Shown here: positions 9,371-64,000 of the stretch, piece by piece | Position numbering within the stretch: position 1 is the stretch's first letter | Layout: every line of letters begins with the position of its first letter | NCBI GenBank assembly: GCA_965240325.2 | Contig: OZ251228.1 | Span: 1,302,001-1,366,000 of the forward strand | Source of the DNA: Rebecca billardiae RCC1528 | Taxonomy: Eukaryota; Protista; Haptophyta | DNA length: 64,000 nucleotides | Reading direction: 5' to 3' | Position numbers and translations under genes: made by a program | Notes under the pieces: generated by a model | Database searches by the model: none | Told to the model about the DNA's origin: nothing | Seen by the model: only the letters and a program-made list of their open reading frames with translations

Positions 9371-11032
9371 ATGGCGTACGCCCTGCCGCCCGCTGTCGAA
9401 CTGACCGACCTGGACGACGAGACCAAGGCCGGCGACGAAGGCTTTGCCCTCTCGCCGAAGCCGCGCGCGTGGTACAAGCGTGCAGCGCTCGGCGCCGTGC
9501 TCATTCTTGCCTGCGCATGCGTGGCCACGTGGCTCGCGGTTGGGCGAACGACATGCTTGAAAGCGCTGGCGGCAACAGGCCCCGACGCGTCGATCACTTG
9601 CGAGCTTGGGTCGGACGCCCCAGCGATGGGCTTTGCGGCGCCGTTCTTCGAAGAGAATGCGGCCGCCTTCTCCCGCCACTTCTTCGGTCCCAGGGTGAGA
9701 GGGGCCCGCGGCCAGGCTAACGGTGCCTCCGTCATGCGTGACGTGTATGCTGCACGGCAGCGCGCGCTGTGCGAGCGGCTGCGAACAAACGAGAGCGCGG
9801 CGACGCTCCTCCGCGAAGCGGCCTCACTTGGACTCGTCGTCGGACCCCTGGGCATCGACCCTGGTCCCGTGCTCGTGGCGGAGCGGGCGGCCGCGCTGGC
9901 GCGGACGGCTGGCAGCAGGCACGACGGGTTCGGGGCGGTGGCGGGGGCGATCGCGGATCTACCCGTGCTCCGCGCGGTGCGCGAGGCCCTGTTCCACGAC
10001 GTGGACTGGGAGCAAGCCGTGCTCGACGCCGACGCGCACGTGCCCATGCTCGGGTACATCCACATCCACGGCCGCAACGCCTTCAAGATCCCGCGGCCGG
10101 CGCTCGCCTGGCGCTTCTGGGCGCTCGATGTGCCGGCGGCGCACCCTCCGCCGGTGGCGCTCAGCGCGGCGCTCGGGTCGGGGGCGGCGTCGCGGGGCGC
10201 GCGCGCTCTGTACGAGCCGCTCTCGCGCGACGGCTTTGCGCTTGTCGAGCGCTGGCGCGGGCTCGATGTCGAGGCGCTCACGGCAGCCGGGATGGCGGCG
10301 CTGGACGCGGCGGCCGCGGAGCCGAGCGCTGGGCCCGTCGTGCGAGCGCACTCGGCGGAGCTCGAGGCGCTGCTGCGCCCGGTGCTCTCGGACGAGGGGC
10401 TGGTGCGCGCGGTGCGCGCGTACCTGAGCCCGCCCCTCGAGCTGGCTGCGCGCGCCGACGGCCCTGCGCACGCAGATCCGCGCGCGGCACCAGCTACGAA
10501 CGCGAGCGCGGCTGGCGGCGGCGGCGGCGCGTGCGCGCTTGGGTATGTCGCCCTGCGCCTGACCGACCAGCTGGACAACGTGCGGCGGTACTTCTCGTCA
10601 ATGTGGCACCACGACCGGGCGGGGCGGCGGCTCAAGCTGTTCATCTTCCTCAACGACGTCGACGCGATCGAGGGCCGCCCCACCGTCGTCGCGCGCGGCA
10701 CGCACACCAGCGTGTGGTACTCCGCGGTGACGATGCTGGACAGTCGTTTCGAGGATCGCTGGGTGCGCGCCCGCCACGAGGCCGTGCCGATGGCGGGCAA
10801 GCGCGGCGGCGGCTTCCTCTTCGACACGAACGCGCTGCACAAGGGCACCCTGACCGGGGCGAACGCACGCAGCGTGATCATCGTTGAGATCGACCGCCCC
10901 GACCGATGCGAGGCGCTCACCCGGCCCGCCGAGCCATCGGGCCCGGCGTTCAAGACGCCTTGTCCGTCCGCGCCGCTCTACCCAGTTGAGGGCACGCCGC
11001 TCTCGTGCGACCGGGCTCCGCGCGCGCGCTGA
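9371..11032 (+). CDS. PhyH-like 2OG-Fe(II) oxygenase, copy 2 (recent tandem paralogue)
   Basis: Nearly identical to 4367-6013, with only in-frame indels. HxD..H triad intact. Confidence 0.75.
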   Translation: MAYALPPAVELTDLDDETKAGDEGFALSPKPRAWYKRAALGAVLILACACVATWLAVGRTTCLKALAATGPDASITCELGSDAPAMGFAAPFFEENAAAFSRHFFGPRVRGARGQANGASVMRDVYAARQRALCERLRTNESAATLLREAASLGLVVGPLGIDPGPVLVAERAAALARTAGSRHDGFGAVAGAIADLPVLRAVREALFHDVDWEQAVLDADAHVPMLGYIHIHGRNAFKIPRPALAWRFWALDVPAAHPPPVALSAALGSGAASRGARALYEPLSRDGFALVERWRGLDVEALTAAGMAALDAAAAEPSAGPVVRAHSAELEALLRPVLSDEGLVRAVRAYLSPPLELAARADGPAHADPRAAPATNASAAGGGGGACALGYVALRLTDQLDNVRRYFSSMWHHDRAGRRLKLFIFLNDVDAIEGRPTVVARGTHTSVWYSAVTMLDSRFEDRWVRARHEAVPMAGKRGGGFLFDTNALHKGTLTGANARSVIIVEIDRPDRCEALTRPAEPSGPAFKTPCPSAPLYPVEGTPLSCDRAPRAR

Positions 11033-31109: not shown

Positions 31110-32478
31110 CTAAGACTTCGAGTCTCCGCCCTCATCGGGACTCTGCCTCTCGTCCAGGGTCAGCTGATCATCGCCCCCGGCCCCGGCGGGCGCTCGAGAT
31201 AACCGCCGCCGGGCCCGTCGAGGACGAGGCAGCCTGTGGCTGCTAGCAGGCTGCTTTGTCGACGTCGGCGACGGCAGGCCACGATCACCAATGCGGGCAA
31301 AGGCGGTGCCATCGGCCGCTGGCGACTCGGCGAGCGCAGCGTCCATGAGGGCCACCGTGAACAGCTCGCCCCATCCCTTGCTGGGCCCCGAGCAGTGCAC
31401 CCAGCATGGCCAAGATGACTCCCGTGGCGCGTGCCACACCTGGCTGCGGAACGGGCCGCGCGTGGGCGCCAGCGCCTGGCTCAGGTTGAACTCGAGCCGC
31501 GTGCCGCGCACCACGCCACGGTGGGCCATCTTGGGGCACGTCATGAAGAGGTCAGCCATGTGGTCGAAGTGCACGTGCGGCCCTTTGGCGTCGCGGTGGT
31601 ACCCCGCGGCGACGTACGTGTGGATGCACCGCTGGTCGTTCCAGCAATCCGTCTCGTTCCGGTCGGGGCCGGCGTATTGCGGGTCGACGAAGCGCATGCC
31701 CAGCGGGCAGCACCATGTCCACGGCCGCGAGCCGCTCAGTGGCCCCTCCCACTCCGTGCGCATGCGCAGCAGGAAGCGGAGAACGTCGCGCGCGCGCCCG
31801 GCGTACTGCCCGGTGTTGCCGTATCGCAGTGGCGTGGGCGACGGCGGGTACGGGTTGGGCACGTGCTGCAGCGCGACCAGCCGCAGCAGCGAGTCGTAAG
31901 GCCACATGTGGAACTCGGCCGCATGCACGATGCCACCGCCAAGCGCGTTGAATTTGGCCGTGAGCTCAGCGCGGTCGCACATGAGGTAGGCGTCGGTGCA
32001 GTCGGCGAAGAAAACGAGCGAGTCCGGATGGATCGCCCCGGAAGACAAGACGTTGTACACCCTGGCGCACCGGGAGGAAAGACGGGAGGAGAGACGGCTG
32101 GCGGTGTCAGGGCAGCGCACAGCGGCGCAAGCGGACGCTCGACCGCCGGCGTCGGGCGGCGCACCAGATGTACTTGTCCATCAAGAAGAAGGAGTGGGAC
32201 GTGAGCTTCTGCGCGCAAAACGGGCTCCGCAGGCATTCCTTTTGCCGTCGAGACTGGCCGGGGAACTCGTCCTCTGCACTCAAGTGGCCGATCACATAGT
32301 CGAGCGATGCTCGCTCGAGCGAGAAGAGCAGCGGCGCGCACTGCTCCCGCCAGTCCGGCTTGTCGAAGTAGGTGAGAGTGACGATGGAAGGCTCGCGAGA
32401 GAGCGAGCGCGTGGAGTGCAGGATCACGCCCGTGGCGACACGCGCGAGCACGTCGACGACGAGCGCAAGCGTCGACAT
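31110..32478 (-). CDS. PLOD-type (procollagen glycosyltransferase domain-like) protein; intron 32062-32164
   Basis: LVFFADCTD, IVHAAEFHMWP, YP..PTPLRYGNTGQYAGRA and NDQ motifs resemble the PLOD GT domain. The splice joins KYIW to VYNV in frame. Confidence 0.75.
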
Positions 32479-37087: not shown

Positions 37088-40000
37088 CTACTTGACGGCG
37101 TCGGTGCTGCCGTCGGCCATCGAGCTGTCGGAACGTGAAGCCTGCTGCGCCTGTGGGGCACGCGCGTGCACGCGCGCAAGAGCTCACAGTCAGCGTCTAA
37201 ACAGCCACACACCCTGCTGCTCGGCGGGCGGACACGTCACGAGCGCGCGCACAGCGCAGGCCGCGGCGCAGGGCGCTGGTGCGAGCGAGGGGCAAGGCGG
37301 CGGCGGCGAGGCGCGAGGCGGCGCGCAAGGGGCGGTGCGCGGCGCGGCGCGCACCTGGGCGAGCTGGACCTCCAGGCTCGTCAGGTGGCGCGCGAGGCTG
37401 AGCGTGCGCTCGCGCCCGCGCTGCTGCTCCTTGTGCCGCTCCTTCAGGCTGCGCCGCATCGCCTCCGCCTCGCGCTCGGCGGCCGCGCGCGCCTCCGCGG
37501 CCGTGCGCGCCTGCGCCTCGCATCGAGCGAGCTCGGTGCTGAGGCAGTGCGCCACGGCGGTGGCCACGGCGCTCGAGCGCAGCTCGCCGAACACGTCGAC
37601 GGCCGCGCCGAGGCCGGCGTCCCCCGACGCAGCGGCCACGTGCCTGCGCGCGCGCACGCCCACGCACGCCGACGGTAGGCGGCGTCGACGGCACGCGGCG
37701 GTGGTCGCGGCGCGGCGCGGTGTGAGCGCGCGGCCGGTGGCGCGCGCGCGTGCGCGGGCGGAGGCGGGCGCGGTGGCGCGGCGGCAGCGCAGGCGAGGCG
37801 CGGGCGCACGGCCGCGCCGGTGCGCCGCGCGCGCACCTGCGCAGCTGCGCGTTCTCGCCCATCAGCGCCGCGTGCATGGCTCGCAAGGCGCTCGCGTCCG
37901 CCGCGCCGTCCGCGCCCGCCGCGCCGCCAGCCGGCGGCAGCGAAGCAGGCAGCGGCGGCAGCGATGCCGCCGAGCCTTCGGGGCCCGCGAGCAGCGCGGC
38001 CGCGGAGGCGCGCAGCGCGTCGATGGCCGCGAGCGCCTCCGCCTGCTTGCGCTCGGCCATCGCCACCTCCTTCTCACTCGGCAACTCCGCGCCAGCGCCG
38101 CCGCCGCCGCCGGAGCCCGCGCCGCCGCCCGCCGCGCGCGCGCGCACGAAAGTGTATGAGCCAAGTGCCACGCGCGCGCCGCCGACCGTTTTGAGCCGCA
38201 TGTTCGCGCCCGAGAGGAGGCGCGCGACGGAGGGCGCGAGGAGGTACGCCGCGGTGAAGTACGCCGCGGCGAGCTCGAAGTGCCCGTGCGAGTTCGCCAC
38301 CTTCGCCTCCGCGTGCAGCTCGTCGGCCGCGTGCGCGAGCGCGGCGGCGCGCGCGGCGGCCTCGCCGCTCCGGCCGACTCCAGCGCTCGCCGCCGCCTCC
38401 ATCGCCACCTCCGCCATCGCCGCATCCGTCCGCTCGGCGGCGCGCTCGACGAGGAAGGCGAGCGCGGGCGGCGGCGCGCCCGCGCCCCCGCCGTCCCCAC
38501 CGAGCTGCGCCTCGCCCACCCAGTCCGCGCCGAACGTGTGCAGCAGCCCGAGAGTCGCTGAGAGCTGCGAGCGCACGCGCGACAGCGCGCGCGTCGCGTC
38601 GGCCGCGCGCGCCCGCTCGGCCGCGGCGCGCGCCTCCGAGTCGGCCTCGCGCACCGCCGCGTCGGCGCGCGCGGCGCGGAGGGCGGCGAGCTCGGCGGCG
38701 AGCTGCTCGCACCGCGCGGCCAGCGCGTCCGCCGAGCGCTGCCGCTCCTCCTCCTCCTCACGCAGACGGTCGCCGGCCGCGGCAACGCCCGCAGCGGCCG
38801 CGTGCGCGCGCGCGGCCGCGCCGCCGGCCGCGTGCGCGCCCGCCTCGGCCGCGCGCGCGCGGGCGAGCGCGCTTTCGAGCGAGGTCTCGGCGGCGCGCAG
38901 CTTGGCGCTCAGCGCGGCGACCTGCTCGGCGGCGGAGGCCGCGCCGTCGGCCTCGGCGCCCGCCGCCTCCGCCGCCGCCCGCTCCACAGCCGACGCGCGC
39001 GCCTCCGCGGTCGCGGCGCGCGCCTCCGCCGCGCCCGCGCGTGCCTCGGCCGCAGCCGCGCGCTCGTCCGAGCCGGCCGCCCAGCGCTCGGCGGCGTCAC
39101 GGGCCTCGACGGCGGCGCGCGCCTCCGCGCGCGCCGCCTCGAGCGCCGAGGACGCCTCGGCGAGCTGCCGCCGCGTGCCCTCGAGCTGTGAGGCCATTCT
39201 CTCGGCCGCCTGCGCCCGCCCGGACTCCCCGGACTCGGAGCCCTCGCGCGCGGCGGCGTCACGCGCGGCCGCGGCCGCGGCGGAGGCGGCCGCCGCTGTC
39301 TCCCGCAGCGTTCGCGCCTCCTCCATCGCCTCGTCGCGCTCGGCGGCGGCGCGGCGCACGCGCTCCGTCGTCTGCGCACGCTCGGACGCAAGCTGAGCCT
39401 GCACCGCAGACAACTGCTCGCGCGCCGCGCGCGCCTCGGCCGCCGCCTCGTCCCGCTCCGCCGCGGCCGCGGCCGCGAAGGCGGCAGCGCCGGTCGACGT
39501 CTGCGTGTCCGTGCCGCTGGGCGCGGCGGAGCCGGGCTTCGCCGCCGCCGAGGGCGCGGCGGCGGGATCAGCCGCGGCCGCGGCGCTCGGCTCGGCGCGC
39601 CGCGTCGCGCCGCGCCTGCCAAATGACGCCGCGCGCGCCAGCGCGCCGAGCACGCCGCCGGCGGCGGCCCCCTGCGCCCCGGCTGTCGCCGCCCCGCTTG
39701 CCAGCGCGCCGCCCCGCGCCGCGCCAGCCGAGGGCGTGGGGCTGCTGCCTGCGTCGGATGGCACCGAGCGGTTGTCAGACTCACGCGGCGTGCGCTTTCC
39801 AGACTGGCGCGGCGTGCGGCCCGAGCCGGACCAGTCCTGGAGGGACGAGCTCGAGCCGAGCGACGCGAGCGACGCGTCCGAGCCGTACCCGCTGAGCGCG
39901 CCGCTGCCGCCGCCGCCGCCGCCCCGCGCGCTCGCCGAGCCGCCCTCCGCTGAGCCCTGGCCGTCAAGTGGCGCGGCGTAATTCTGAAGCCAGCGCGAGG

Positions 40001-40664
40001 AGAGCGTGGCGCGCAGCGTGCCCACGGGCGCCATCGCGCCAGCCTCGCGCATGAGCGGCAGCTCCACCTCGTCCGTGCTCGGCGTCACGCGCGCGTGCGC
40101 CGCCAGGTCGAGCGTCGCGCGGCAGAGCGGCACGAGCTTGCGCCGGCCGCCGGCGACCTGCGCGATGGCGATCGTGATCGTGGCCTCCTTGCCCTCGAAG
40201 GCGGCGTGGCGGTCGGCGTCGCGGTAGAGCGTGCACAGCATCTGCATCGGGGAGCCATCCAGCTTCGTCTCGCCCCCTGCGCACGCGAACTCGCGCGACT
40301 GCGCGCGCGCGCAGCCACACGCAGCGCGTGTGCGCGCCTCAGCCGCGGGTCCCGCCGCTGCCGCGCGCGCGGGCGCGCACGCACCTCGGCCACCTTGCTC
40401 CCGCGCTTCCAGATGATTTGGAGCGAGGCGTTCGCGGGCAGCGTGTGCAGCACCTCACGCTCGAACGAGAGCGACATCGGCCGCAGGCAGTATTGGTACT
40501 TGAATGCTCTGCGCGCGCGCGGCGCACGCCGACGCAAACGCGCCGCGGCGGCCTCGGTTGGCGGTGGCGGTGCAGCGCGGCTCGGGCGGTGGTAGGGCGC
40601 GCGCGCACGCGGAGCACGCGCACGGCGCGCACCCTTTGCCGCCCTTCTTCACCCATTTGTGCAT
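37088..40664 (-). CDS. NT-C2 (EEIG1/EHBP1-type) domain plus long Ala-rich coiled-coil protein; introns 40509-40632, 40299-40384, 37644-37836, 37151-37354
   Basis: The spliced N-terminus reads MHKWVKKGGKGAFKY..LQIIWKRGSK..MLCTLYRD..FEGKEATI..LCRATLDLA, typical of NT-C2. Four GT-AG introns join the ORF pieces in frame. The last intron is the least certain. Confidence 0.8.
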
Positions 40665-41253
40665 CGCGCGCCGAAAGCTGCTCCCAGCGCGCGGCGGCGG
40701 CCGGTGGATGCCCGCTGAACACGGGGCGATGCGCGCGTTCGGGTTGCCAGTTCGGCGCCACAATGGGCTTATTTTCGGCCGGTGCTTAGCAAAGTCTCGC
40801 ACACAGCCGGGCGCCATCTTTAGATTTACTCTATTGATTGCAATACGTAATATACGATTATTCCTTCAATGATTACATCCCGCCGTTGCCTCGCCCGCGC
40901 AGCGCGGGCGGATGGCAGGTTGGGCCAGGTAGAAGAGGGGGACAACGCGAACGTGGAACGAGCGGAGCGGCGGCCGAATTCCTGATTCATCATTTCATGT
41001 GCGCGGCGCGCCACGCGCCACACGCGTCTGACGCGTCCACACTCGGCGGCCTCGGGGTCTGACGCCGGCACCGGGTGTCAGCGGTGGGCACGCTGCACGG
41101 CAGCGCTTGACGCGACTCCAGTCCGGCCCGCCCTAGCTCAGCCGGGCGGCCGTCCACTACTCTGTGAGTACGATTCTCATAGTCATTCTGTGTCACTGCG
41201 TCGGCGGCAGTCCACGGCATTAGGCTTAGCATGGCACCCGACCGAGTCACTAG

Positions 41254-45520: not shown

Positions 45521-47083
45521 TCAGTCACTGCCCTTGGCGGCGTGCATGTAGGTTGACAAGGGCAGTGAACCAGCCGGCTCATCGACAGAATGTCTGCCCG
45601 GGCCGTGCACCGCAAGGAGAAGCAGTGCGCCCACCGTTGAGAGGCGTTGGCAGAAGAAGTAGCGCTCATGATCTGAGCACAGGGCGAGACAGGAGGGCAG
45701 GAGGGCGGGCGCAGGCAGCAGCCCACAGCGGGATGTCAGCGCGTGCGCATTTCCTGCGCTCCAGCGAGGGGCAGGGCGCGGGCAGCATACCAGATACGGA
45801 GATGAGCACGCGCGGCTTTTTCTTCGCGCTGCTCGCGCGCTGCAGCCCCTGCAGCGCAATGGGGAGCAGCTTTGATTGTGTGTCCAGCGTGGGCAGCTGC
45901 GCTTCGTTGGCGCTGTTCACGTCCACGTCGATGGAGAGATGACCGTGCTCGCGGCTGAGCTTCCCCATGCCGTAGCCCCAGTGCATCCAGAAGGGGTGCC
46001 AGTACAGATTGGTCCCGAACATGATGGCCGCAAGCACGATCGCGATTCGCCTGCGCCGTCCCACGCGCGGCGGGCGCACGTGGGCGCGAGCGGCATGAGC
46101 GCAGCGCGAAAGCAGGCGGCTGCACCGTGATGCGAACGCAGCACGGCACGCGCGGCGATCGGTACCGTGATTTGGCGCCGATGATGACGAGCACGGACAC
46201 GTAGAAGAGGACGACCATCATGGCCCCTTGCAACAGGCCTGCGTGCATGTCGATGATGGTGAGCGATGGCGACGCGAACGCCGCCTGGAGCTTGTGAAAT
46301 GCCTACGGTAGACGCGAGCGCGGCGGCGCGGCGCACACGCGGCGATCAGAGTGAGCCCACCCATGTCCGTGAGCCCTGGCTGCACAGCAGCCACGACGGG
46401 TGGGTGGTCGCAGGCGGAGCGATGGGCGCGTGAGCACTCACGTAGTACACAAAATAGCACGTGACGCACGTACGCCCAGCCAGCTCGAGATAGCTCGTGA
46501 TCAGATCGTCCCCGTGTCGACTGAGAGCAGCTCGCCGCGCGGGGTGGGAGGAGAGGTGACCTCCGGCTCCGCTGCTCTGCCGGAAGTCCGCCATGAGGAT
46601 GAGCAGGCCGCCCATCACTGTGACGGTCTCGCTCATGAACATGTAGTTGCGCTGCTGCCCGTACACAAACGGGTGCAGCGCGCACCAGCACAAGAGAACG
46701 ATGCAGCCCGTGATCGGCCGGCGATTGCTGACGACCGCAACGACGCCGCCAAGTTGCAGGGCCGCGGACAAGGCTGGCATGAGCTGTGTGAGCGACGCGG
46801 GCACAAAGTTCGTGTTGTGCTCGACAAGCTCGTGCATGGTCCGCACCTGCACCGAGTAGTCAGTGAGCATGCGCAGCGCATCCTCAAAAAACGTGATCGT
46901 AACGAGGACACGCGCAAGCGTGACGAGTTTGCGGTGGACGAGCTTCACGTTCACGTGCTCAGCGATGCGTGAGAGAAGCGTCGACTGTGGACGAGCTGCC
47001 GCGAGGCTGAAAACCGCGTCGTCGTTCTGATATCGTGAGCGCGGTGCGGGTGGCTCGTCGTCGCCGGAGTCGGCGGCCGCCAT
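45521..47083 (-). CDS. SURF4: SURF4/Erv29 family ER cargo receptor; introns 46303-46441, 46051-46165, 45673-45790
   Basis: LARVLVTITFFEDALRM, ETVTVMGGLLILMAD, YLELAGR and final exon ERYFFCQRLSTVGALLLLAVHGPGRHSVDE. All three splices keep the frame. Confidence 0.85.
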
Positions 47084-47541: not shown

Positions 47542-48174
47542 TCAGCCCTCCTGCTGACCGCCTCCCTCCCGGCGCTTGCGGAAGAAGGAGAGCAGCAGTG
47601 CGGCACACTCGTCTGCAAGCACGCCGCCTCGGGCCTCGAGTGCCTCATGGAACGGATGTGCATGCTGCGAGCGCATGGAGCCGTCGATGGCGCCCAGGCG
47701 CTCGCTCGACGCGCCGTAGACGATGCGGTCGACGCGAAACGCGCGTATCGCCGCGGCGCACATCGGACACGGTTCGAGAGTGGTGTACAGGGAGAGGCCA
47801 CTGAGGCGCCAATTGCCGCGCTCCTGCGCGCCGCGCCGCATGCACTGAATCTCGGCGTGCGCTGTCGCATCCTGTGAGGATTCGACGGCGTTGCGAGCGC
47901 TCGCAATCACCGTGCGCTGCGCCGTGTCGACCAGAACGGCGCCCACGGGAACCTCTCCGGCGCTAAACGCCTCGTGCGCCTCGTCCAGCGCCAAGCGCAT
48001 GAAGTCCTCGTCTGTGGCATCGCGACACGGCTGCAGCGTCGTGTGTGTCGCCGCACAGGGAGGCATGACCAGCCGGGGGGCTCGTCTGAGCGAGCGCCAC
48101 GCGCGCTGTCTCGCGGGGACGGCGAGCGATGGCGCCATGGAGACGACGAGCAGCCCCGCGAGGTGATAACTCAT
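47542..48174 (-). CDS. tadA: tRNA adenosine(34) deaminase, bacterial TadA type, probably plastid-targeted
   Basis: FMRLALDEA..GEVPVGAVLV, DATAHAEI, NWRL..LYTTLEPCPMC. N-terminal signal plus Arg-rich transit-like leader. Confidence 0.92.
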   Translation of the reverse strand: MSYHLAGLLVVSMAPSLAVPARQRAWRSLRRAPRLVMPPCAATHTTLQPCRDATDEDFMRLALDEAHEAFSAGEVPVGAVLVDTAQRTVIASARNAVESSQDATAHAEIQCMRRGAQERGNWRLSGLSLYTTLEPCPMCAAAIRAFRVDRIVYGASSERLGAIDGSMRSQHAHPFHEALEARGGVLADECAALLLSFFRKRREGGGQQEG

Positions 48175-48272
48175 GCCGCCGTCGCGTCGGCGAGGCGGCG
48201 ACGATGGCCGATGCGCGCGACGTTGCGGACCGGAAGCTTTCACTTTTCAGCAGACAGTTCAGTTATTTACAG

Positions 48273-49149: not shown

Positions 49150-50266
49150 CTAAGCTCTGATGCCGCCTGGCGTCCCGGAGGTCCCGCGCACGGCTGGTTG
49201 GCGCGGCGGCCATCGTCCGTCCTCCACGACGGGATCGTCCTCCACCGCCTCTCGCGCCGCGCGCAACACCTGCGCGCCACACGCACGTGCGTCGCACGCG
49301 CAATCCGCTCGCGACGGTTAGCCTGGACGTTGCGTGCGTGCGCTCGCTCGCGCAGCGTGCCATGTCGGCGCGGTGGTGGGCGCTTCGACGTGCGCAACGC
49401 ACCGTGCTAGGTGGAGGCGAGTCCTCCTCCACCACGGAGAAGGTGACCACGTCGTCGTCTGCCGCATCCCCGCCCTCCTCGTCAGCGGGCGTGCGTGACA
49501 TGTGCCGAGCGCTCGCGTCGAGCGGCGAGCGCTCGCGGAACTCACGGATGGTATTCTCCACCCACGAGACGCCCTTGCGCTGGTTGTTCGGCCGACGCTT
49601 CGCGTGCTTGGGTGCGCCGAGTAGCCTCTGCGGCTTCGACCCGTCCACCATCGCCGTCGGTGAGGCGTCGGCGGGGTCGGCCATGCGCGGCGCGCCCAGC
49701 GGCGGGTTGCCACTCAGCGGCTGAAGTGGGGCGCGTGCCTTTGGGGCCTGCGCGCGCGCGTGTGCCGCAGGCAAAGGCGGGCGTGAGCCCCGAGGCGCGC
49801 ATGCATCGGGCCAGGCATGTGCACGCGCGCGCGCGCGTACCTTCAGCGGCGGCAGCGCCGTTGGCGCGGCGGGCGGCGGGGCCGCGTGCGAGTCGGCCAT
49901 GCCGGCGCCGACCTTGGTACGGAAGGAGGCGTCTGGCAGCAGCGCGCGGGTCTCGCGTCTCCCATCGTCGCTGGTGAGCAGGGTGGGCGGCAGCGGCGCG
50001 AGCACTTCGCGTGGTGCCAGGGCGTCCGCGCTCTCCTCCTGCGCGGGGGCAGTCGGTGTGCCGGGTCCACACTCGCCGGGCGAAGGCACCTCCACGCGGT
50101 CCACCTCGCCCATCACTTCCTTCGGCGGCGCGGCGGAGACGGTGTCGAGCTCCTTCGAGGGCGACTCCGAGTTGATTTGGGGTGGCCTCGTCTTAGAGGC
50201 GCTCGTGGGCGTGGGGGCCTTTGGCTCGCTCACATCCGCAGTCCGGCACAGGGCGAAGAGCTTCAT
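49150..50266 (-). CDS. Hypothetical low-complexity protein; introns 49748-49840 and 49270-49402
   Basis: Pro/Ser/Glu-rich ORF with two well-formed GT-AG introns and a KGVSW (RVxF-like) motif. The start is uncertain. Confidence 0.55.
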
Positions 50267-52560: not shown

Positions 52561-54419
52561 TTATTCACGATCGATGCGAGGCGGTTGATGCAGACGATGA
52601 GGCTGCTCAGTATGACTGGGCGAGGATGGGGTGGCCGAAGTCTCAGCCATCATGCTCGAGACCGCAGTATTGAAGGCGGCGACCCCGCCGGGGTAGGCCT
52701 CGATCACGGTGAGGAGCAGCTGCCGGTCCTCGCTGTACATGCAATCCGCTTGGCGCGCGTCAAAGCTCCGAAAGATGAGGGCGGACGAGGTGGTCGACAT
52801 GCTCGCGAGCCGCAGCACGTCCGTCTTGCTCTTGCGCTCGGCCCCAATCGCGAGGTGGATGAAAAGCTCGACCACGCACCAGCTGCACGCCGTCGGCGGC
52901 GTGGCGAGAGGCGCGCAGGCAGCGGGGAGGGCGGCGGCCGCGGATGCGTGAGGAAGGCGCGAGCGCAAGCGGCGCGCGGGGAGGCGTGTGGGTGGTAGGC
53001 GGGATCGCGCTCGCGCAACGAGCGTGCGCACGCGCGCGCGCGCACAGGCGCTGATGGAGGCTGGCGCCGAGGAGGACGAGAACGCGGTCGCAGCCCGCCA
53101 GGAACACGGGCAGGTTCGCCAAGCCCGCCTCGGGCGTCGAATTCACGAGGCAGTACTGATCGATCCACAGCCGGGGCGCGCGCCCGTGCACGCGCGCAAA
53201 GTCGGCCGCCCACAGCCGCAGCTGCTCGGCCTTCTCCACGCCGCTGTCGTGGTGCGAGTGGCACACGAAGGCGTCCACGCTGCCGATCGTCGCGGGCTGC
53301 GACTTGGCGATGCACTCCTCGTCGGAGAGCATGCCCGACATCCCCGCGGCACATACCGCGTCCCCGTTCACCGATCGGAAGGCCGCCTGCCCCAGCTGCA
53401 GCGCGTCGTCGGGCGATCGGCCGTTGAGCAGCGCGCTGAGCAGCGTCGCCGAGCTGATGTTCTCGCCGTGCGAAGCAAGCCAGGTCTGCACGACCTCGCG
53501 CAGCCGACCGGAAGCCGCCGCAACGCCGGTCAGCAGGAACACCGACGCGTCGATGAACACCGGGCCTGACTTCGGTTGGATGCCCAGCACCGCTCGCAAG
53601 TCTGACGGGAGGATGGCCAGGCCCATCACAATCTGCGTGACCGCGTACACTCGCCATACCGAGTCGAGCTGCGCGCGGGCCGGCGTGTGCCCGGTGAGCA
53701 GCGCGACGAGGAGGACCACGAAGCCCACCACGTGCGCGATCATGATGGCGATCGCTCGCGCCAAGCGCAAGGCCTCAGCTGTGCACGCGACGGACGCCGA
53801 TGCGATGATGCACTCGCTGGTTCCGTCCGCGAGCGCGCGCGCGGACGGGAGGAATACCAAGACGAGGAATGCGCAGACGGTGTAGACGATGAAGAGCATG
53901 TACAGCACCAGACCGATCCGCACCACGCGAGGTTGAGTCGGCAAGAGCGCGAGGAGCAGGCTGAGCGCGCCAAGGCTGTAGGTGACGTTGATCGCCGCGG
54001 CGCGGACGTGCTGCAGCGCTCGAATCGGCACGAGGCCAAACACCAGGGCGAGCAGGAACAGGGTCAGCCCGAGCGCCACGGCGGGGATCTGGATGATTCT
54101 CTGGCGCCGGCGGCCCTGCGGTCGCGCGGGAGGGGTGGGACGCGATGAAGGGCTCAGTGCGCGTCGCGGGAGGACGCGTCCCCGGCCGCGGCTCCTGACC
54201 GGAGCCGCGCGGCGGCAGGCGGGCACGCACCGCGCTGCGAGAGCGCTCGAGCGCGTCGCGGATGGCGAGTGCAGCGGGTCGATAGCCCTCCGGGGGTGAC
54301 ACGCGCGACCCTGGCATGGTTCTCGAGGGTGCCGTCGACGTGGCGCTCCCCTGGGGAGGCGCCTCATCGTCTTGGACGTCGTCCTCTGCTACGATCGTGT
54401 GCGGCTCGACGGGCGCCAT
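52561..54419 (-). CDS. Multi-pass membrane protein with C-terminal TIR-like domain; introns 54116-54230 and 52883-53045
   Basis: About 6 TM helices, then DAFVCHS..D, LWIDQYCL, LPVFLAGCDRVLVL and the spliced RLWCVVELF motif. Confidence 0.75.
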
Positions 54420-57191: not shown

Positions 57192-60100
57192 ATGGGCGAA
57201 CCTCACGCCGACGCGCGTGTGGTGTGGGTGGAGGAGGCCGTCGTGCCCGCGCTCAAGATCAAAACCGAGCGCTTCCGCAAGCTCTGCACGTCAGAGCCCG
57301 ATTTCGCCGTCCTGAAGGACTTCCTGGACGCGACTGAGCAGCGCGTCGTCTACTTCACGGACGGCGCGAAGGAGCTGGCGATCGCCGCGCAGCCGCCCGC
57401 GAGCGTGAAGAAGAAGGTCGTCTACCTCCTGCGCGACGAGGGCGACCCGCTCACCGCCGAGACCATCCGCTCGCGCGTGATGTTTGGCGACCTGCACCCG
57501 AAGCCGCTCGACGGGCTGCTCGCGGCGTGCTCGGACGTGTACCTGCCGATCATCTCGAGCCCGGCGAACCAGCAGGGCTGGCCCGACGTGGTGGCGAACG
57601 AGGTGACGGAGATCTTCCACCGCACGGTCGCCGCCATCTACGTCGCCCTCGGCCAGGCGCAGGGCAAGACGCTGCTGCCGCTCCCGCCCGCGCAGATGCT
57701 CGCGCCCGACGCGCCCGGCAGCGCGGGCTCAAAGGACCGGATCCACGTGCTCGAGACGGCGGTGGTGACGTGGACGATGCAGATCAAGAACGTGCTCAAG
57801 CTCGACCCCGAGGAGGTGCTGCACGTGGGCAACCCCGGCCCGCTCGCCGGCCTCGAGTTCTGGTCGGCCAAGGCGGCCAACCTGCAGTCGATGCAGCAGC
57901 AGCTGCACGGCGAGAAGATCCGCAAGGTGATGCGCGTGCTCAACCTGACCAAGTCGCCGTACTACGACGCGTTCGCGCTGCTGATCAAGGAGGTGGACCT
58001 GGCGTGCGCCGAGGCCGTCGACAACACCAAGTTCCTCCGCACGCTGCGCGTCTCCTTCGAGAAGCTCAACGGCGGCGACGACTTCCTCGAGCTGCCCGCG
58101 CTCTTCACGCCGATCATGCACCTCGCGCTGCTCGTGTGGCGCGACTCGAAGCACTTCAACACGCCGGCGGGGCTGGCGGTGCTGCTGCGCCAGATCTGCA
58201 ACGACCTGATCGCGCGCGCGCGCGCGTACGTCGAGCCCGACGAGGTCTTCAACATCGAGGCGAGCGAGGCCGTCGAGCGGCTCGTGCTCACGCTCAAGGT
58301 GTGCGGCCACTTCAAGTCGTGCTATTTCACGTACAAGCTCAAGTCGGCGAAGGAGATCCCGCAGAACCCGTGGAAGGTGCAGAACTCGGCGCTGTTCCCG
58401 CGGCTCGACGCGTTCCTCGAGCGGTGCATGGACCTGCTCGACCTCTTCAAAACCGTCACGCAGTTCGAGAAGCTCGAGCGCGTCGAGATTGGCGGCAACA
58501 AGGGCGCGCACCTCACGCTGTGCGTCGCGCAGATCTACGCCGACTTCGAGGCGCTGTTCACGGGGTTCAAGCAGGTGGGGTACGACGTGCTCGACGTGGA
58601 CATCGCGCGGTTCGAGGCGGACTACTACGCCTTCCGCCAGCGCATCCAGGAGCTCGAGGCGCGCCTCGCCACCGTGCTCAACGACGGCTTCGACGACTGC
58701 GCGACGCTGTACGACGCGTTCAAGCTGACCGACTCGTTCGGCGAGCTGCTCGAGCGCGACTTCATCCAGGCGGACCTCGAGCTGCGGCACATCCGCGTGA
58801 TCAAGGCGTTCGGCACCGACCTGGCCGACGTGCGCCGCGCCTTCCTCCGCGACCACGAGCGCTCGCTCGTCGGCAAGTTCTACGAGCGCGAGGGCGCGCC
58901 GCTGTACGCCAACATGCCGCCGGTCGCGGGCGCGCTCTACTGGGTGCGCGGGCTGATCGAGCGGATCGAGCAGCCGATGGGGCACCTGGAGCGGGTGATG
59001 GCGCTGTGCGCGGAGTTCGACGAGACGCGCGACACGCTCGCGCTGCACCAGGACGTGCTCGCCCAGCTCAAGGAGTTCGAGGGCGCGACGTACGACGACT
59101 GGGCGCTCTCGGTCGACTCGGTCTCGTCTGAGAAGCTGCAGATGCCGCTGCTCGTGCGCGACCGCGACACGGGCGAGCTCGCGGTCAACTTCGACTCGGC
59201 GCTGGTGCGGCTGCTGCGCGAGGTGAAGTACCTGCACATGCTCGCGCTCAAGACGCCCGACATCGCCGAGGAGCTCTTCGCCAAGCACGAGGTCTTCCGC
59301 GTGCAGATCGGCAAGCTCAACCAGGTGACGCACAAGTACAACCACATGGTGCGCACGATGCTGGACGTCGAGAAGCCGCTGCTCAAGGGGCAGATGAAGT
59401 CGATCGACAAGCTGATCGAGCGCGGCGTGCGCGACCTCACCTGGTCCGCCGGCGGGATCAACGAGTTCATCGACCAGGCGATGGTCCTCGTCTCGGAGGC
59501 GCACGCCACGCTCGCCGAGATGAAGTCGAACATGCACGCGATCGAGAAGCTGCTGGACGAGTGGGCGGTGCAGCCGCTCATGCGGCGCAAGGAGGGCAAG
59601 ACGTACACGCCCGCGTCGTTCGTCGAGGAGCACGAGCAGTACCTCGAGACGCGGTACAAGAACATCACCGAGTCCGCCAAGCAGATCCACAAGCTGCTCG
59701 CCAACTCGAACCTCACGCTCAAGGTGTCGAAGGGCGCGCCCGCGTGGCGCGCGTACGTCGAGTTCATCAACGACATCGTGCTCGCCGGGCTGTCGCGCAC
59801 CGTCGTCACGTCGCTGCGCTACCTGCTGCAGCAGGTCGACCCGACGCTCGCCAAGCCGCCGAAGAACGGCGCGCCGCTCGACCTCACGCCGATGCTCGAG
59901 GTCGAGCTGCTGCTCGAGGGCGGAGACGTGCGCTTCAGCCCAGAGCTCGGCGTCGCGCTCGCCGGCACGGGCACGGGCGTGCTCGACCGGATCTACGCGC
60001 TGATCGCCGACTTCTACGAGTGCGTGCGGCTCGTCTCGCGGCTCGAGCGGCAGGACGGCGACTTCCTCAAGGAGATCGAGGAGAACGAGGACGTGCGCTT

Positions 60101-63100
60101 CGCCGTGCACCGCATCATCACCGAGTGTGAGGAGAACACAGCGCAGTGCAACGAGTTCCGCAAGCCCTTCCTCGAGCACCGCCACCTGTGGACGAAGGAG
60201 ATCGACTCGCAGCTCGGCCGCTTCAACTCGACGCGCCGCGCCGCCGACGCCGACGCGGACGCGCCGCCGCCCACGCCGCTCACGCCGGTGACCGCGGTCG
60301 CGGACGCAATGTTTGGCGAGCACCGAGACGGCACCGCCGAGCTCGCCGACATCAACCTGCAGGACTTCGACGAGCAGATCGCGCAGTTCAAGTCGGAGCA
60401 GGCGCAGGTGGAGCACCTGCCCGCGGGCGCGACCTCGCGCTTCATCCGGATCAACTCCAAGCCGGTCAAGAACGCGCTCTCCGTGTGGGCGTCCAAGTGG
60501 GTGTACGCGCACACGCACCTGCTCGAGAAGCGCATCGCGCTCGCGCTCGATGACCTCATGTCGTTCGTCTCCAAGGTGCAGGGCGGGCTGAGCACGGACA
60601 TCGACCCGGAGGACACGGAGCAGCTGATCACGGCGATGACGTACATCCGCGACGTGCGCCGCCGCACCGACGAGATCGACCACATGTGGGCGCCGCTCAA
60701 CGGCACGGTCGCGCTGCTGCGCAAGTACGGGATCGCCGTGCCCGAGGCGACGATGGAGCTGATCGAGAGCGCGCCGCAAAAGTGGGAGAACGCGCGCAAG
60801 GCGACGGTGAACGCGCGCGAGGCGCTCGGCCCGCTGCAGGCGCTGCAGGCGGAGAAGATCAAGGAGGAGGTCGAGGACTTCGGCGAGCGCGTCGAGGAGT
60901 TCGTCGCCGCGTTCGACGAGGAGGCGCCGTTCAAGTTTGGCGTCGGCATCGAGCTCGCGTACCAGCGGCTCGACGAGTGGAACCAGAAGCTGGTCGAGAT
61001 GGAGCAGGAGGCGGCGACGCTCGCCGAGTCGGAGGAGCTCTTCGAGGTGTACGTGCACACGTACAAGGAGATGCACGAGTGCCGCGCCAAGCTGCTGCTG
61101 CTCAAGCACTCGTGGGACGTCGCGTCGCTCGTGATCGAGGTCTTCGCCGACTGGCGCAACACGCTCTGGTCGTCGGTGGACGTCGACGAGATGATCGAGG
61201 AGTCGAAGCGGCTGATGAAGGAGGTCAAGTCGCTGCCCAAGGCGGCGAAGGCGTGGGACGTGTTCGCCGGGCTCTCGGCGCTCGTGCAGGAGATGACGAT
61301 CTCGCTCCCGCTCGTGCAGGACCTGGGCGACGACTCGATGCGCGAGCGGCACTGGAAGAAGCTGATGCGCACGTGCGGCAAGACGTTCGTGATGGACTCC
61401 AAGTTCAAGCTCGACCACCTGCTCGCGCTCAACCTGCACGAGTTCCAGGACGCGGTGGGCGACATCGTCGAGCAGGCGCGGCAGGAGCTCAAGATCGACA
61501 ACCAGCTCTCCAAGATCATCGCCACGTGGTCGCAGCTCGAGCTGCAGTACGAGCCGTTCAAGCAGACGGGCGTGCACGTGCTGCGCCCGGCCGACATGGT
61601 GATCGAGGCGCTGGACGAGCACGAGAACTCGCTGCAGAACATGATGGGCAACCGCTTCATGGGCTTCTTCGAGCTGCAGATCACCGACTGGAAGACCAAG
61701 CTCGCCAAGGTGCGCACCGTGCTCGACATCTGGTCCGAGGTGCAGCGCGCGTGGTGCTCGCTCGAGTCCATCTTCCTCGGCTCGGAGGACATCCGCGAGC
61801 AGCTGCCCGAGGACGCGAAGCGCTTCGACCAGATCGACGCGGACTTCCGCGAGCAGATGGCGGGGGCGAAGGAGACGAAGAACCCCGTCGACGCGTGCAC
61901 CGCCGACGGGCGCGAGGACGCCTTCACCAAGTGCCAGACCAACCTCGACCTGTGCCAGAAGTCGCTCGCCGAGTACCTTGAGGTGAAGAAGAAGAAGTTC
62001 CCGCGCTTCTACTTCGTCTCGCCCGCCGACCTGGTGGACATCCTGTCGAAGGGGCGGAACCCGCCGCTCATCCAGGAGCACTTCTCCAAGTTCACCGACA
62101 ACACCGCCAAGATCGACTGGGCCGTCGACGAGGAGACCGGCGCGCAGCTCCCGGTCGCGCGCGGCATGTTCTCGGGCGAGGGCGAGCACGTGCCGTACAC
62201 GGAGGAGTACCGGTGCGAGGGGCAGGTGGAGGAGTGGCTGACGGGGCTGATGAACCACTCGCAGCACGAGATCAAGCAGGCGCTCGTCGAGTCGGTCAAC
62301 GCCTTCGTCGAGCTGCCGCGCAACGAGTGGCTCTTCAAGTACAGCGCGCAGCTCTCGATCACCACCTCGCAGATCTGGTGGACGCTCGAGGTCTACTCTG
62401 CGTTCGACCGGCTCGAGACCGGCAACGAGAACGCGCTCAAGGACTACCTGGGCGTGGCGATCGCCGGGCTGGCGACGCTGACGCAGCTCGTGGCGACCAA
62501 GCTCTCCCGCGGCGACCGCGTCAAGATGATCACGATGATCACCATCGAGGTGCACGCGCGCGACATCGTGCAGCGGCTCATCACCAACCGCATCGACTCG
62601 TCGTCCGAGTTTGCGTGGCAGTCGCAGCTCAAGTACCGCTGGGACGAGGAGCGCAAGGACTGCATGATCAACATCGCGGACGCGGAGATGAGCTACTCGT
62701 ACGAGTACACGGGCAACACCGGCCGCCTCGTCATCACCGCGCTCACCGACCGCTGCTACATCACGCTCACGCAGGCGCTGCGGCTCATCCTCGGCGGCGC
62801 GCCCGCCGGCCCGGCCGGCACGGGCAAGACGGAGACGACCAAGGACCTCGGCCGCGGGCTGGCGATCTGGGTGATCGTGCAGAACTGCTCGGACCAGATG
62901 AACAACAAGGTGATGGCCAACTTCTTCTCCGGCCTCGCGCAGACCGGCGCGTGGGGCTGCTTCGACGAGTTCAACCGGATCGCGGTCGAGGTGCTCTCGG
63001 TCGTCGCCGGCCAGTACATGTCAATCCTCGAGGCGATCCGCTCCAACAAGCGGCAGTTCCTCTTCGAGGAGGACGAGATCGCGCTCAACCCGACGGTGGG

Positions 63101-64000
63101 CGCGTTCATCACGATGAACCCCGGCTACGCCGGCCGCACCGAGCTGCCCGAGAACCTCAAGGCCCTCTTCCGCCCGTGCGCGATGGTCGTGCCCGACTTT
63201 GGGAACATCGCCGAGATCTCGCTCGCCGCCGAGGGCTTTCTCGAGGCCAAGCCGCTCGCGCACAAGTTCGTCACGCTGTTCGCGCTGTGCAAGGAGCTGC
63301 TCTCGAAGCAGGACCACTACGACTGGGGGCTGCGCGCGATGAAGGGCATCCTGCGCATCGCCGGCGACATGAAGCGCACCGAGCCGACCAAGACCGAGTT
63401 TCAGATCCTGATGCGCGCGCTGCGCGACACCAACCTGCCCAAGTTTGTGCTCGCCGACTTCGGCATCTTCCTCGGGCTGATCAACGACCTGTTCCCGCGC
63501 GTGGAGGAGGCGGCGAAGACGGACCCGCGGCTGATGCAGGCGTGCAAGGAGGTGATCGCGAAGCCCGACTCGGCGCTCCAGCCCGAGGAGCTCTTCATCA
63601 CCAAGATCTGCAACCTGGCGGAGATGCTCGGCGTGCGCCACTGCTGCTTTGTGCTCGGCGCGGCCGGCGCGGCCAAGACCAAGCTGTGGGAGACGCTCGC
63701 GGCGGCGCAGACGCACCTGCAGCTCGGCGGGGCGGCGACGATGTACCAGGCGCTCAACCCCAAGGCGGTCACCACCAACGAGCTCTACGGCTACGTCCAC
63801 CCCGTCACCAAGGAGCCGTACGACGGCATCATCTCCAAAATGATGCGCGACTACTCGCGCATGGAGAACGACGTGCCCAAGTGGATCATCCTCGACGGCG
63901 ACATCGACGCGGAGTGGATCGAGTCGATGAACACGGTGATGGACGACAACAAGGTGCTCACGCTCGTCTCGAACGAGCGCATCCCGCTCACCGCGTCGAT
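57192..64000 (+). CDS. Axonemal dynein heavy chain, outer-arm beta-like (DNAH9/11/17, ODA4 class); runs off the window
   Basis: Frame opens at ATG 57192 and is in phase with the AAA1 P-loop GPAGTGKT (62808), NCSDQM, WGCFDEFNRI, FITMNPGYAGRTELPENLKALFRP, QDHYDWGLR and DGDIDAEWIESMNTVMDDNK. Tail and linker (FPRFYFVS) are present. Confidence 0.96.
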   Translation, partial: MGEPHADARVVWVEEAVVPALKIKTERFRKLCTSEPDFAVLKDFLDATEQRVVYFTDGAKELAIAAQPPASVKKKVVYLLRDEGDPLTAETIRSRVMFGDLHPKPLDGLLAACSDVYLPIISSPANQQGWPDVVANEVTEIFHRTVAAIYVALGQAQGKTLLPLPPAQMLAPDAPGSAGSKDRIHVLETAVVTWTMQIKNVLKLDPEEVLHVGNPGPLAGLEFWSAKAANLQSMQQQLHGEKIRKVMRVLNLTKSPYYDAFALLIKEVDLACAEAVDNTKFLRTLRVSFEKLNGGDDFLELPALFTPIMHLALLVWRDSKHFNTPAGLAVLLRQICNDLIARARAYVEPDEVFNIEASEAVERLVLTLKVCGHFKSCYFTYKLKSAKEIPQNPWKVQNSALFPRLDAFLERCMDLLDLFKTVTQFEKLERVEIGGNKGAHLTLCVAQIYADFEALFTGFKQVGYDVLDVDIARFEADYYAFRQRIQELEARLATVLNDGFDDCATLYDAFKLTDSFGELLERDFIQADLELRHIRVIKAFGTDLADVRRAFLRDHERSLVGKFYEREGAPLYANMPPVAGALYWVRGLIERIEQPMGHLERVMALCAEFDETRDTLALHQDVLAQLKEFEGATYDDWALSVDSVSSEKLQMPLLVRDRDTGELAVNFDSALVRLLREVKYLHMLALKTPDIAEELFAKHEVFRVQIGKLNQVTHKYNHMVRTMLDVEKPLLKGQMKSIDKLIERGVRDLTWSAGGINEFIDQAMVLVSEAHATLAEMKSNMHAIEKLLDEWAVQPLMRRKEGKTYTPASFVEEHEQYLETRYKNITESAKQIHKLLANSNLTLKVSKGAPAWRAYVEFINDIVLAGLSRTVVTSLRYLLQQVDPTLAKPPKNGAPLDLTPMLEVELLLEGGDVRFSPELGVALAGTGTGVLDRIYALIADFYECVRLVSRLERQDGDFLKEIEENEDVRFAVHRIITECEENTAQCNEFRKPFLEHRHLWTKEIDSQLGRFNSTRRAADADADAPPPTPLTPVTAVADAMFGEHRDGTAELADINLQDFDEQIAQFKSEQAQVEHLPAGATSRFIRINSKPVKNALSVWASKWVYAHTHLLEKRIALALDDLMSFVSKVQGGLSTDIDPEDTEQLITAMTYIRDVRRRTDEIDHMWAPLNGTVALLRKYGIAVPEATMELIESAPQKWENARKATVNAREALGPLQALQAEKIKEEVEDFGERVEEFVAAFDEEAPFKFGVGIELAYQRLDEWNQKLVEMEQEAATLAESEELFEVYVHTYKEMHECRAKLLLLKHSWDVASLVIEVFADWRNTLWSSVDVDEMIEESKRLMKEVKSLPKAAKAWDVFAGLSALVQEMTISLPLVQDLGDDSMRERHWKKLMRTCGKTFVMDSKFKLDHLLALNLHEFQDAVGDIVEQARQELKIDNQLSKIIATWSQLELQYEPFKQTGVHVLRPADMVIEALDEHENSLQNMMGNRFMGFFELQITDWKTKLAKVRTVLDIWSEVQRAWCSLESIFLGSEDIREQLPEDAKRFDQIDADFREQMAGAKETKNPVDACTADGREDAFTKCQTNLDLCQKSLAEYLEVKKKKFPRFYFVSPADLVDILSKGRNPPLIQEHFSKFTDNTAKIDWAVDEETGAQLPVARGMFSGEGEHVPYTEEYRCEGQVEEWLTGLMNHSQHEIKQALVESVNAFVELPRNEWLFKYSAQLSITTSQIWWTLEVYSAFDRLETGNENALKDYLGVAIAGLATLTQLVATKLSRGDRVKMITMITIEVHARDIVQRLITNRIDSSSEFAWQSQLKYRWDEERKDCMINIADAEMSYSYEYTGNTGRLVITALTDRCYITLTQALRLILGGAPAGPAGTGKTETTKDLGRGLAIWVIVQNCSDQMNNKVMANFFSGLAQTGAWGCFDEFNRIAVEVLSVVAGQYMSILEAIRSNKRQFLFEEDEIALNPTVGAFITMNPGYAGRTELPENLKALFRPCAMVVPDFGNIAEISLAAEGFLEAKPLAHKFVTLFALCKELLSKQDHYDWGLRAMKGILRIAGDMKRTEPTKTEFQILMRALRDTNLPKFVLADFGIFLGLINDLFPRVEEAAKTDPRLMQACKEVIAKPDSALQPEELFITKICNLAEMLGVRHCCFVLGAAGAAKTKLWETLAAAQTHLQLGGAATMYQALNPKAVTTNELYGYVHPVTKEPYDGIISKMMRDYSRMENDVPKWIILDGDIDAEWIESMNTVMDDNKVLTLVSNERIPLTAS

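Follow-up and report, generated by a model that had tools for sequence, protein, structure and literature searches.

The window analysed here, 64,000 nucleotides (nt) of contig OZ251228.1 from the haptophyte Rebecca billardiae RCC1528 (assembly GCA_965240325.2, positions 1,302,001 to 1,366,000 of the forward strand), is densely filled with genes that contain few introns, and about half of the introns that were found in it open and close with alternating C/G tracts placed directly beside the splice sites. Four of the introns interrupt a single five-exon gene on the minus strand, referred to below as the NT-C2 gene. The label reflects only the appearance of the sequence, and Pfam reported no domain in the N-terminal frame that was scanned. 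The gene was read by hand, its exons match those of an orthologue at a related locus, L005, and all four introns are backed by a restored reading frame and by orthologous introns in L005. Its parts are as follows, with the pairing of the two intron ends in register counted from positions +2 and -2.

37088-40665, minus strand: five-exon gene; an NT-C2-like domain at the N-terminus, then a long coiled coil rich in Ala/Glu/Arg
40633-40665, minus strand: exon 1, with the ATG at 40665
40509-40632, minus strand: intron 1, 124 nt, opening with GTGCGCGCCGTG and closing with CGCGCGCGCGCAG; 7 base pairs (bp) in register
40385-40508, minus strand: exon 2
40299-40384, minus strand: intron 2, 86 nt, opening with GTGCGTGCGCGC and closing with GCGCGCGCGCGCAG; 11 bp in register, including one G-U
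37837-40298, minus strand: exon 3
37644-37836, minus strand: intron 3, 193 nt, opening with GTGCGCGCGCGG and closing with GTGCGCGCGCGCAG; 10 bp in register
37355-37643, minus strand: exon 4
37151-37354, minus strand: intron 4, 204 nt, opening with GTGCGCGCCGCG and closing with GCGCGTGCCCCACAG; a CG run close to the acceptor, and in-register pairing of just 2 bp
37088-37150, minus strand: exon 5, with the stop codon TAG at 37088-37090

The NT-C2 introns are four of a set of 13 that was curated by hand, 10 of them confident and 3 uncertain, and introns with unusual ends may be missing from the list. Junctions were predicted from homology, a restored reading frame, a drop in coding score and orthologous introns, and spliced models were searched and compared exon by exon. 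A self-written Viterbi gene finder, given no splice models at first and small splice matrices later, was used as a pointer only; it fused adjacent genes, ran on through introns that lack stops and set boundaries wrongly. Its call at 40277-40380 was discarded for the curated intron at 40299-40384, and an intron that it placed in an F-box/RCC1 gene proved false and was ruled out by Pfam coordinates. A single-exon reading was obtained for a dynein heavy-chain open reading frame (ORF; 57192-64000), a patatin-like gene, two exostosin-like genes and the F-box/RCC1 gene. This intron-poor content agrees with that of Diacronema lutheri, whose public genome was annotated with evidence from RNA sequencing and in which 45% of the genes are single-exon (PMC8379373).

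All 13 introns have GT-AG borders, and nine of them open with GTGCG, the remaining donors being GTGAGT, GTACCG, GTCATC and GTACGC. About half are of a CG type that opens with GTGCGCGC, closes with GCGCGCAG and has no pyrimidine tract; these are the introns at 2832-3000, 37151-37354 (in part), 37644-37836, 40299-40384, 40509-40632, 49748-49840 and 52883-53045 (at its 5' end only). The non-CG introns comprise three in a SURF4 gene and those at 32062-32164, 32209-32295 and 54089-54230. The initial annotation had described CG-rich, reverse-complementary ends in many introns, and ends of the kind it described are present in all seven that it named (counting 37151-37354, which sets the start of its range), each on the minus strand. 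Its remark that such acceptors lack a U-rich tract was also borne out, as the pyrimidine runs at CG-type acceptors measure just 2-6 nt (pyrimidine fraction 0.47-0.62), compared with 7-11 nt in the non-CG introns and in some orthologues. The SURF4 introns, named at the time as exceptions, do depart from the pattern, with GTGAGT, GTACCG and GTCATC donors and, in one of them, a long pyrimidine tract. Furthermore, the G+C fraction of most introns (0.72-0.87) exceeds that of the 1 kilobase (kb) on either side (0.61-0.75), the opposite of what is seen in most eukaryotes.

The tracts are concentrated at the intron ends, as had been proposed. Alternating C/G runs of at least 10 nt occur at 16.8 per kb in the terminal 16 nt of the 13 introns, compared with 2.0 per kb in their interiors (p=0.0016) and 0.40 per kb elsewhere (p=2e-9), so that the terminal density is 8 times that of the interiors and 40 times that of the rest of the window. 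Measured as coverage, (CG)3 or longer makes up 34% of the first 16 nt of the introns and 32% of the last 16, compared with 8% of the interiors and 3.8% of the window. The two ends also tend to go together, with CG runs at both ends in seven introns, at neither end in four, and at one end only in one intron each for the 5' and the 3' end (Fisher p=0.03), but four of the seven share one gene.

One explanation for this distribution is mutational, with CG microsatellites growing by slippage and GC-biased processes beside a splice consensus in which G and C alternate, and playing no role in splicing. The composition of the window is in keeping with such a process. Its G+C content is 66.7%, CpG and GpC are over-represented (observed/expected 1.24 and 1.27) and CC and GG under-represented, and C/G runs of at least 10 nt number 35, where 9.2 are expected from the dinucleotide content. 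These runs are seen in exons and between genes as well as in introns, the two longest (16 nt) being exonic. In addition, interruptions in the terminal runs resemble single substitutions within longer runs, and the long complementary ends, or clamps, are specific to this lineage. The eightfold excess of terminal runs over the interiors of the same introns argues against it, because the interiors are just as GC-rich and short GCGC seeds are common in them too, and terminal enrichment is therefore hard to credit to neutral repeat growth alone. Regional G+C content was rejected as a cause and accounts for little; correlations with it are weak and not significant (Spearman 0.43, p=0.14), and the introns at 2832-3000 and 52883-53045 lie in flanks of 61-63% G+C. 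Moreover, introns with a CG tract tend to lack a pyrimidine tract and the reverse, suggesting that one signal was substituted for the other. A neutral by-product is accordingly an unlikely account of the tracts. If it were nevertheless correct, it would mean that end-to-end complementarity in CG-rich introns is automatic, and is not evidence of structure or of a transposon origin.

The length of the tracts also bears on how real splice sites might be told from chance matches. On the sense strand of the exons there are 42 GTGCGC and 37 GCGCAG strings in 21.5 kb, the former being frequent because GTG-CGC encodes Val-Arg. For 17 of the 42 GTGCGC strings, a GCGCAG lies 40-400 nt downstream, whereas at the level of 8-mers only two such pairs are left. 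The hexamers are thus not enough to define an intron, and the extended tracts would supply the discriminating information. A separate observation concerns the large NT-C2 exon, where a perfect donor-like GTGCGCGCGCGCGCG stands in frame (Phe-Val-Arg-Ala-Arg-Ala) at 38133-38147 on the minus strand, with GCGCAG strings downstream of it. If this string is never spliced, real donors would need a mark beyond the CG tract.

The initial annotation went further and suggested that the complementary ends form an RNA stem that pairs each donor with its own acceptor. However, the reverse complement of (CG)n is again (CG)n, so that donor and acceptor ends that carry such tracts, whether they belong to one intron or to different introns, are complementary automatically. 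The pairing lengths on which the suggestion was built were largely reproduced, with 10 bp at 37644-37836, 11 bp with one G-U at 40299-40384, 7 bp at 40509-40632 and 7 bp with one G-U at 52883-53045, but the match described for 49748-49840 is not a stem in register and exists only as an off-register duplex of the two ends (-34.5 kcal/mol). True partners average 4.70 bp in register and shuffled partners 4.29 bp (p=0.32), with duplex energies of -22.2 and -20.9 kcal/mol, respectively (p=0.17), and for the six CG-type introns the true assignment had no advantage over the other permutations (p=1.0 and 0.8). Within the NT-C2 gene, intron ends on opposite sides of exon 2 or exon 3 are just as complementary as those of one intron. 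Across exon 2, the acceptor of intron 1 and the donor of intron 2 form a duplex of -34.1 kcal/mol, compared with -32.3 kcal/mol for that donor and its own acceptor, and the duplex across exon 3 reaches -33.8 kcal/mol, compared with -32.7 kcal/mol for the donor's own intron. When the 20-nt ends were shuffled with their dinucleotides preserved, the duplex energy matched that of the true ends (P=0.12); only the register of the true ends was somewhat better (P=0.023), since the runs lie directly against GT and AG. Two parts of the earlier proposal did not survive these comparisons: end pairing is no better in energy than a composition-matched null, and a stem does not define donor-acceptor partners, as shuffled partners and cross-exon duplexes are equally good. 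The complementarity is generic, and the enrichment is for a CG tract at either end of the intron rather than for a matched pair of ends.

Generic complementarity could nevertheless be put to use in a helix that bridges the intron, in which the 5' and 3' CG tracts would pair with each other, join the splice sites and replace both the pyrimidine tract and the need for U2AF2, as has been described for (AC)m-(GT)n introns of zebrafish, a precedent with the same anatomy (PMC4691745). The long, co-occurring runs at both termini and the weak pyrimidine tracts of the acceptors would fit such a helix, and end duplexes of -23 to -35 kcal/mol are possible. In partition-function folds of whole introns, the 12 nt at one end pair with the 12 nt at the other in 4 of the 13 introns, where terminal stems dominate the predicted ensemble; these are 37644-37836, 40299-40384 (10 of 12 expected pairs), 49748-49840 and, unexpectedly, 32062-32164. 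End-to-end pairs average 3.35, compared with 2.02 in random genomic segments matched for GC and length (p=0.03), an excess that comes from the four folding introns. The intron at 2832-3000 folds end-to-end in part. In 9 of the 13 introns, however, the ends are predicted to pair with interior CG-rich runs or not with each other, as in intron 1 of the NT-C2 gene, whose ends pair with its interior, and in 52883-53045, whose ends are not predicted to pair mutually. A helix that starts at +2 would also bury the donor positions needed by U1 and U6, and splicing is usually inhibited when a 5' splice site is sequestered in a stem. The lack of partner specificity, with cross-exon duplexes of equal or greater stability, counts against the helix as well, as does the comparison with orthologues below, which have no long clamps and no compensatory changes. 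On balance, a generic bridging helix is possible but doubtful. We would give somewhat less credence to the wider claim of a haptophyte intron class whose self-complementary (CG)n arms, set beside GU and AG, zip the splice sites together and replace the pyrimidine tract and dependence on U2AF2, which would constitute an independent, non-vertebrate form of structure-dependent splicing arising from a palindromic repeat. The observation made initially is confirmed, and its interpretation is partly supported.

Related loci provide a view of the age of the introns and of their ends. The intron at 2832-3000 belongs to a UTP7/BING4 gene whose closest protein relatives are metagenome and Logan sequences with 71-81% identity, with a Prymnesium protein among the named matches. 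An intron at this codon is present in six taxa (the window, L001, L002-L004, L006, L007 and L008), with donors that all read GT[GA]CG and acceptors that all end in [CT]GCAG. Pairing between the ends is kept in 6/6 at +2/-2, +4/-4 and +5/-5, in 5/6 at +3/-3, and is nowhere consistent past position 5; the inner positions are fixed by GUGCG and YGCAG. Changes among the six taxa are one-sided, either from G-C to G-U or to a broken pair, and no compensatory double change was found in these UTP7/BING4 introns. The introns of L001 and L002 contain 11-nt pyrimidine runs.

The NT-C2 gene gives a similar picture. All four of its introns occupy identical positions in L005, which derives from the same sample as L007, and the aligned protein pieces are 49-55% identical; two metagenome scans for further NT-C2 relatives gave none. 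The L005 donors are GTGGGC, GTATGT, GTACGC and GTGCGG. On the acceptor side, a CG run beside the AG is missing in three of the four introns, whose 3' ends are richer in C/U, only the acceptor of intron 2 being CG-rich. The orthologue of intron 1 has the same codon phase, starts with GTGGGC and ends in a pyrimidine-rich stretch, with no clamp; that of intron 2 starts with GTATGT and ends with CGCGCGCGCAG; that of intron 3 starts with GTACGCAC, ends with CACCCTGCCGCAG and pairs over 1 bp in register; and that of intron 4 has a pyrimidine-rich 3' end. The covariation that a conserved stem would leave in relatives is not seen at these loci, where long clamps are not kept and no compensatory change appears. 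A second gene in L001 (LSM) also has an intron of the form GTGCGCGC...TTGCGCAG, from which it follows that a short complementary core, UGCGC/GCGCA, is part of a splice consensus shared by several of these algae. Comparison of the loci thus indicates that the introns are old, that their CG ends arose in the lineage of the window, and that the long clamps are not conserved.

The same data bear on the second suggestion of the initial annotation, that the introns may be old Introners, transposon relics whose terminal inverted repeats would survive as CG ends. The inverted-repeat-like ends do stand exactly at the intron boundaries, as this origin would predict. Five of the introns, however, sit where other taxa have an intron as well, even at 49-55% protein identity for the aligned NT-C2 pieces, and the orthologues carry different ends. 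The interiors share no mutual similarity, as had been noted at the outset, and an all-against-all blastn comparison returned only 14-16 nt matches between CG runs, with nothing held in common beyond those runs and no other copies in the 64-kb window. The lengths are spread over 86 to 204 nt. An Introner origin is very improbable, and was rejected for the tested introns on the grounds of conserved positions and the lack of between-intron similarity. The likeness of GUGCG to the GUGYG motif at the 5' end of group II introns was also considered, and is taken as a coincidence, given that the introns here are nuclear, have GT-AG borders and interrupt nuclear genes.

The reading that we favour, with a probability of roughly one half, is that these are old GT-AG introns whose sequence next to the splice sites became CG tracts in this lineage, that the tracts are extended signals read by sequence, and that their complementarity is a by-product. 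The introns themselves would be ordinary, old U2-type introns in which the donor context was lengthened to GUGCGC(GC)n and the acceptor became (GC)nGCAG, where relatives have a C/U-rich tract. If active, the tracts would act as generic, position-dependent signals, the 5' tract as an extended donor site and the 3' tract as a stand-in for the missing pyrimidine tract, and both might help to distinguish real sites from the many exonic GTGCGC and GCGCAG strings. Their readers would presumably be small nuclear RNAs (snRNAs) or proteins.

Several points weigh against this reading. It is drawn from only 13 introns, four of them in one gene, with predicted junctions, and the enrichment at both ends, the co-occurrence of the tracts (p=0.03) and the terminal stems in 4 of 13 introns would also be expected of a generic bridging helix. 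To our knowledge, no canonical factor reads an alternating-CG 3' tract. When the window and six related loci were scanned with Rfam and for tRNAs, nothing was detected, and hence no snRNA gene and no U1 to set beside GUGCGCGC. A change of this kind does have a counterpart in Mastigamoeba balamuthi, in which a GUGCGC donor is preferred and the U1 snRNA carries a matching change (bioRxiv 10.1101/2022.06.08.495308).

Mastigamoeba is one of the lineages with a transformed donor and a co-evolved U1, together with Entamoeba, in which the donor is GUUUGU (Roy and Bowser 2022, bioRxiv 10.1101/2022.06.08.495308). The haptophyte introns share with this group the atypical hexamer GUGCGC of Mastigamoeba, splice signals that seem more uniform than those of a relative, and a genome that appears intron-poor. 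They differ in that the tract often extends far past +6 and in the presence of a matching acceptor tract, which lies outside that model. The closest known system is that of the (AC)m-(GT)n introns of teleosts (Lin et al. 2016, PMC4691745), in which dinucleotide repeats likewise occupy opposite intron boundaries and co-occur within an intron, as the CG runs seem to do here, the branch point and pyrimidine tract are obscured, and a very stable bridging duplex is predicted. Unlike the fish repeats, the haptophyte tracts are CG at both ends, and thus self-complementary and without polarity, and they pair equally well across exons. They also abut GT and AG, whereas the fish repeats lie further inside the intron; the zebrafish model was simulated with repeats 20 nt in from the splice sites (PMC4691745). 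Furthermore, the haptophyte ends fail the dinucleotide-shuffle energy test that the fish introns passed, and the haptophyte case is known from sequence alone.

Structures that join intron ends have also been proposed for the intermediate and nonconventional introns of euglenids (PMC4770533, PMC3935182), the intermediate introns combining such a structure with canonical borders. The euglenid structures are specific to each intron, whereas here the repeat is generic, the borders are plain GT-AG instead of non-canonical or variable, and most introns have no predicted stem. Introner elements of Micromonas, Aureococcus and others (PMC11282704) resemble the present introns in having inverted-repeat-like ends at the boundaries and in occurring in marine algae. 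The haptophyte introns, in contrast, form no sequence family, occupy old conserved positions and vary in length. G-triplet intronic splicing enhancers, which are read by hnRNP F/H, occur near both ends of short, GC-rich vertebrate introns. They are comparable in that a GC-rich motif lies near both sites of short introns with a weak consensus, although the motif is a different one, and, unlike the case of hnRNP F/H for G-triplets, we know of no protein that reads the haptophyte CG tracts.

The literature search found no paper on CG-flanked introns in haptophytes. If the terminal CG tracts do work in splicing, whether through pairing or through sequence, they would be a second independent case, besides teleosts, of simple boundary repeats that replace canonical 3' signals. 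If functional, they would also illustrate what becomes of splice signals when a genome is very rich in GC and poor in introns. The public genome of the related D. lutheri (PMC8379373) makes the question directly testable.

The remaining introns of the window that were described individually are listed below.

2832-3000, minus strand: sole intron found in the UTP7/BING4 gene, 169 nt, placed by homology to UTP7/BING4 proteins; opening with GTGCGACGCGCGCGCG and closing with GTGCGCGCGTGCAG; 4 bp in register, or about 11 bp with one bulged G
32062-32164, minus strand: intron of 103 nt in a PLOD-type glycosyltransferase-like gene, opening with GTGCGCCGCC and closing with an 11-nt pyrimidine run followed by GGTGCGCCAG; no CG run
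45673-45943, minus strand: SURF4 intron, GTCATC..CTGTGCTCAG, with a long pyrimidine tract and no CG clamp
46051-46165, minus strand: SURF4 intron, GTACCG..GGCGCAG, no CG clamp
46303-46441, minus strand: SURF4 intron, GTGAGT..CCGTAG, no CG clamp
49748-49840, minus strand: probable in-frame intron of 93 nt, uncertain, placed by a drop in coding score only; opening with GTACGCGCGCGCGCGCG and closing with CACGCGCGCGCGCAG
52883-53045, minus strand: intron of 163 nt, placed by a frame change and a drop in coding score; opening with GTGCGCGCGCGCGCG and closing with GACGGCGTGCAG

The introns at 52883-53045, 32062-32164 and 49748-49840 rest solely on the coding-score drop and the reading frame, and for the last of these a second in-frame acceptor is possible at 49721. 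The SURF4 introns were placed by Pfam coordinates, end statistics and a three-frame reading against what we take to be the human SURF4 sequence; the acceptor of the first and the donor of the third are uncertain. In the last SURF4 intron (45673-45943), GTCATC is the only frame-compatible donor, and the intron holds some 45 open codons, partly coding-looking and presumably absent from human SURF4, so that an alternative or retained segment is possible.

Two database proteins of related algae, P0003 and P0002, were called straight through a stop-free, GC-rich intron (L001 5260-5437 and L002 3488-3628), and their sequences therefore include translated intron or end in a false C-terminus. Read-through of this kind in protein calls puts homology work on these genomes at risk in general. 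Gene order around UTP7/BING4 may also have changed: a deaminase gene adjoins it in L001 (3225-3800) and L002 (1487-1981), whereas in the window a TadA/CMP-deaminase-like ORF lies 43 kb away from it, at 47542-48243 on the minus strand, and the deaminase genes could alternatively be paralogues.

The intron-free dynein heavy-chain ORF at 57192-64000 on the plus strand has more than 2,260 codons and continues past the edge of the window. Its G+C content at third and second codon positions (GC3 0.98, GC2 0.38) is far more extreme than that of other genes in the window, and within it lie a 16-nt (CG)8 run, at 58211-58226, and numerous GTGCGC strings, evidently unused as donors. On the same strand, 4367-6013 and 9371-11032 are neighbouring paralogues with a weak PhyH-like match, nearly identical in their first 35 residues and in their C-termini. 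The second has about 264 nt extra (9497-9760), called by the gene finder as an intron (GTGCTC..GGCAG), which may be an insertion.

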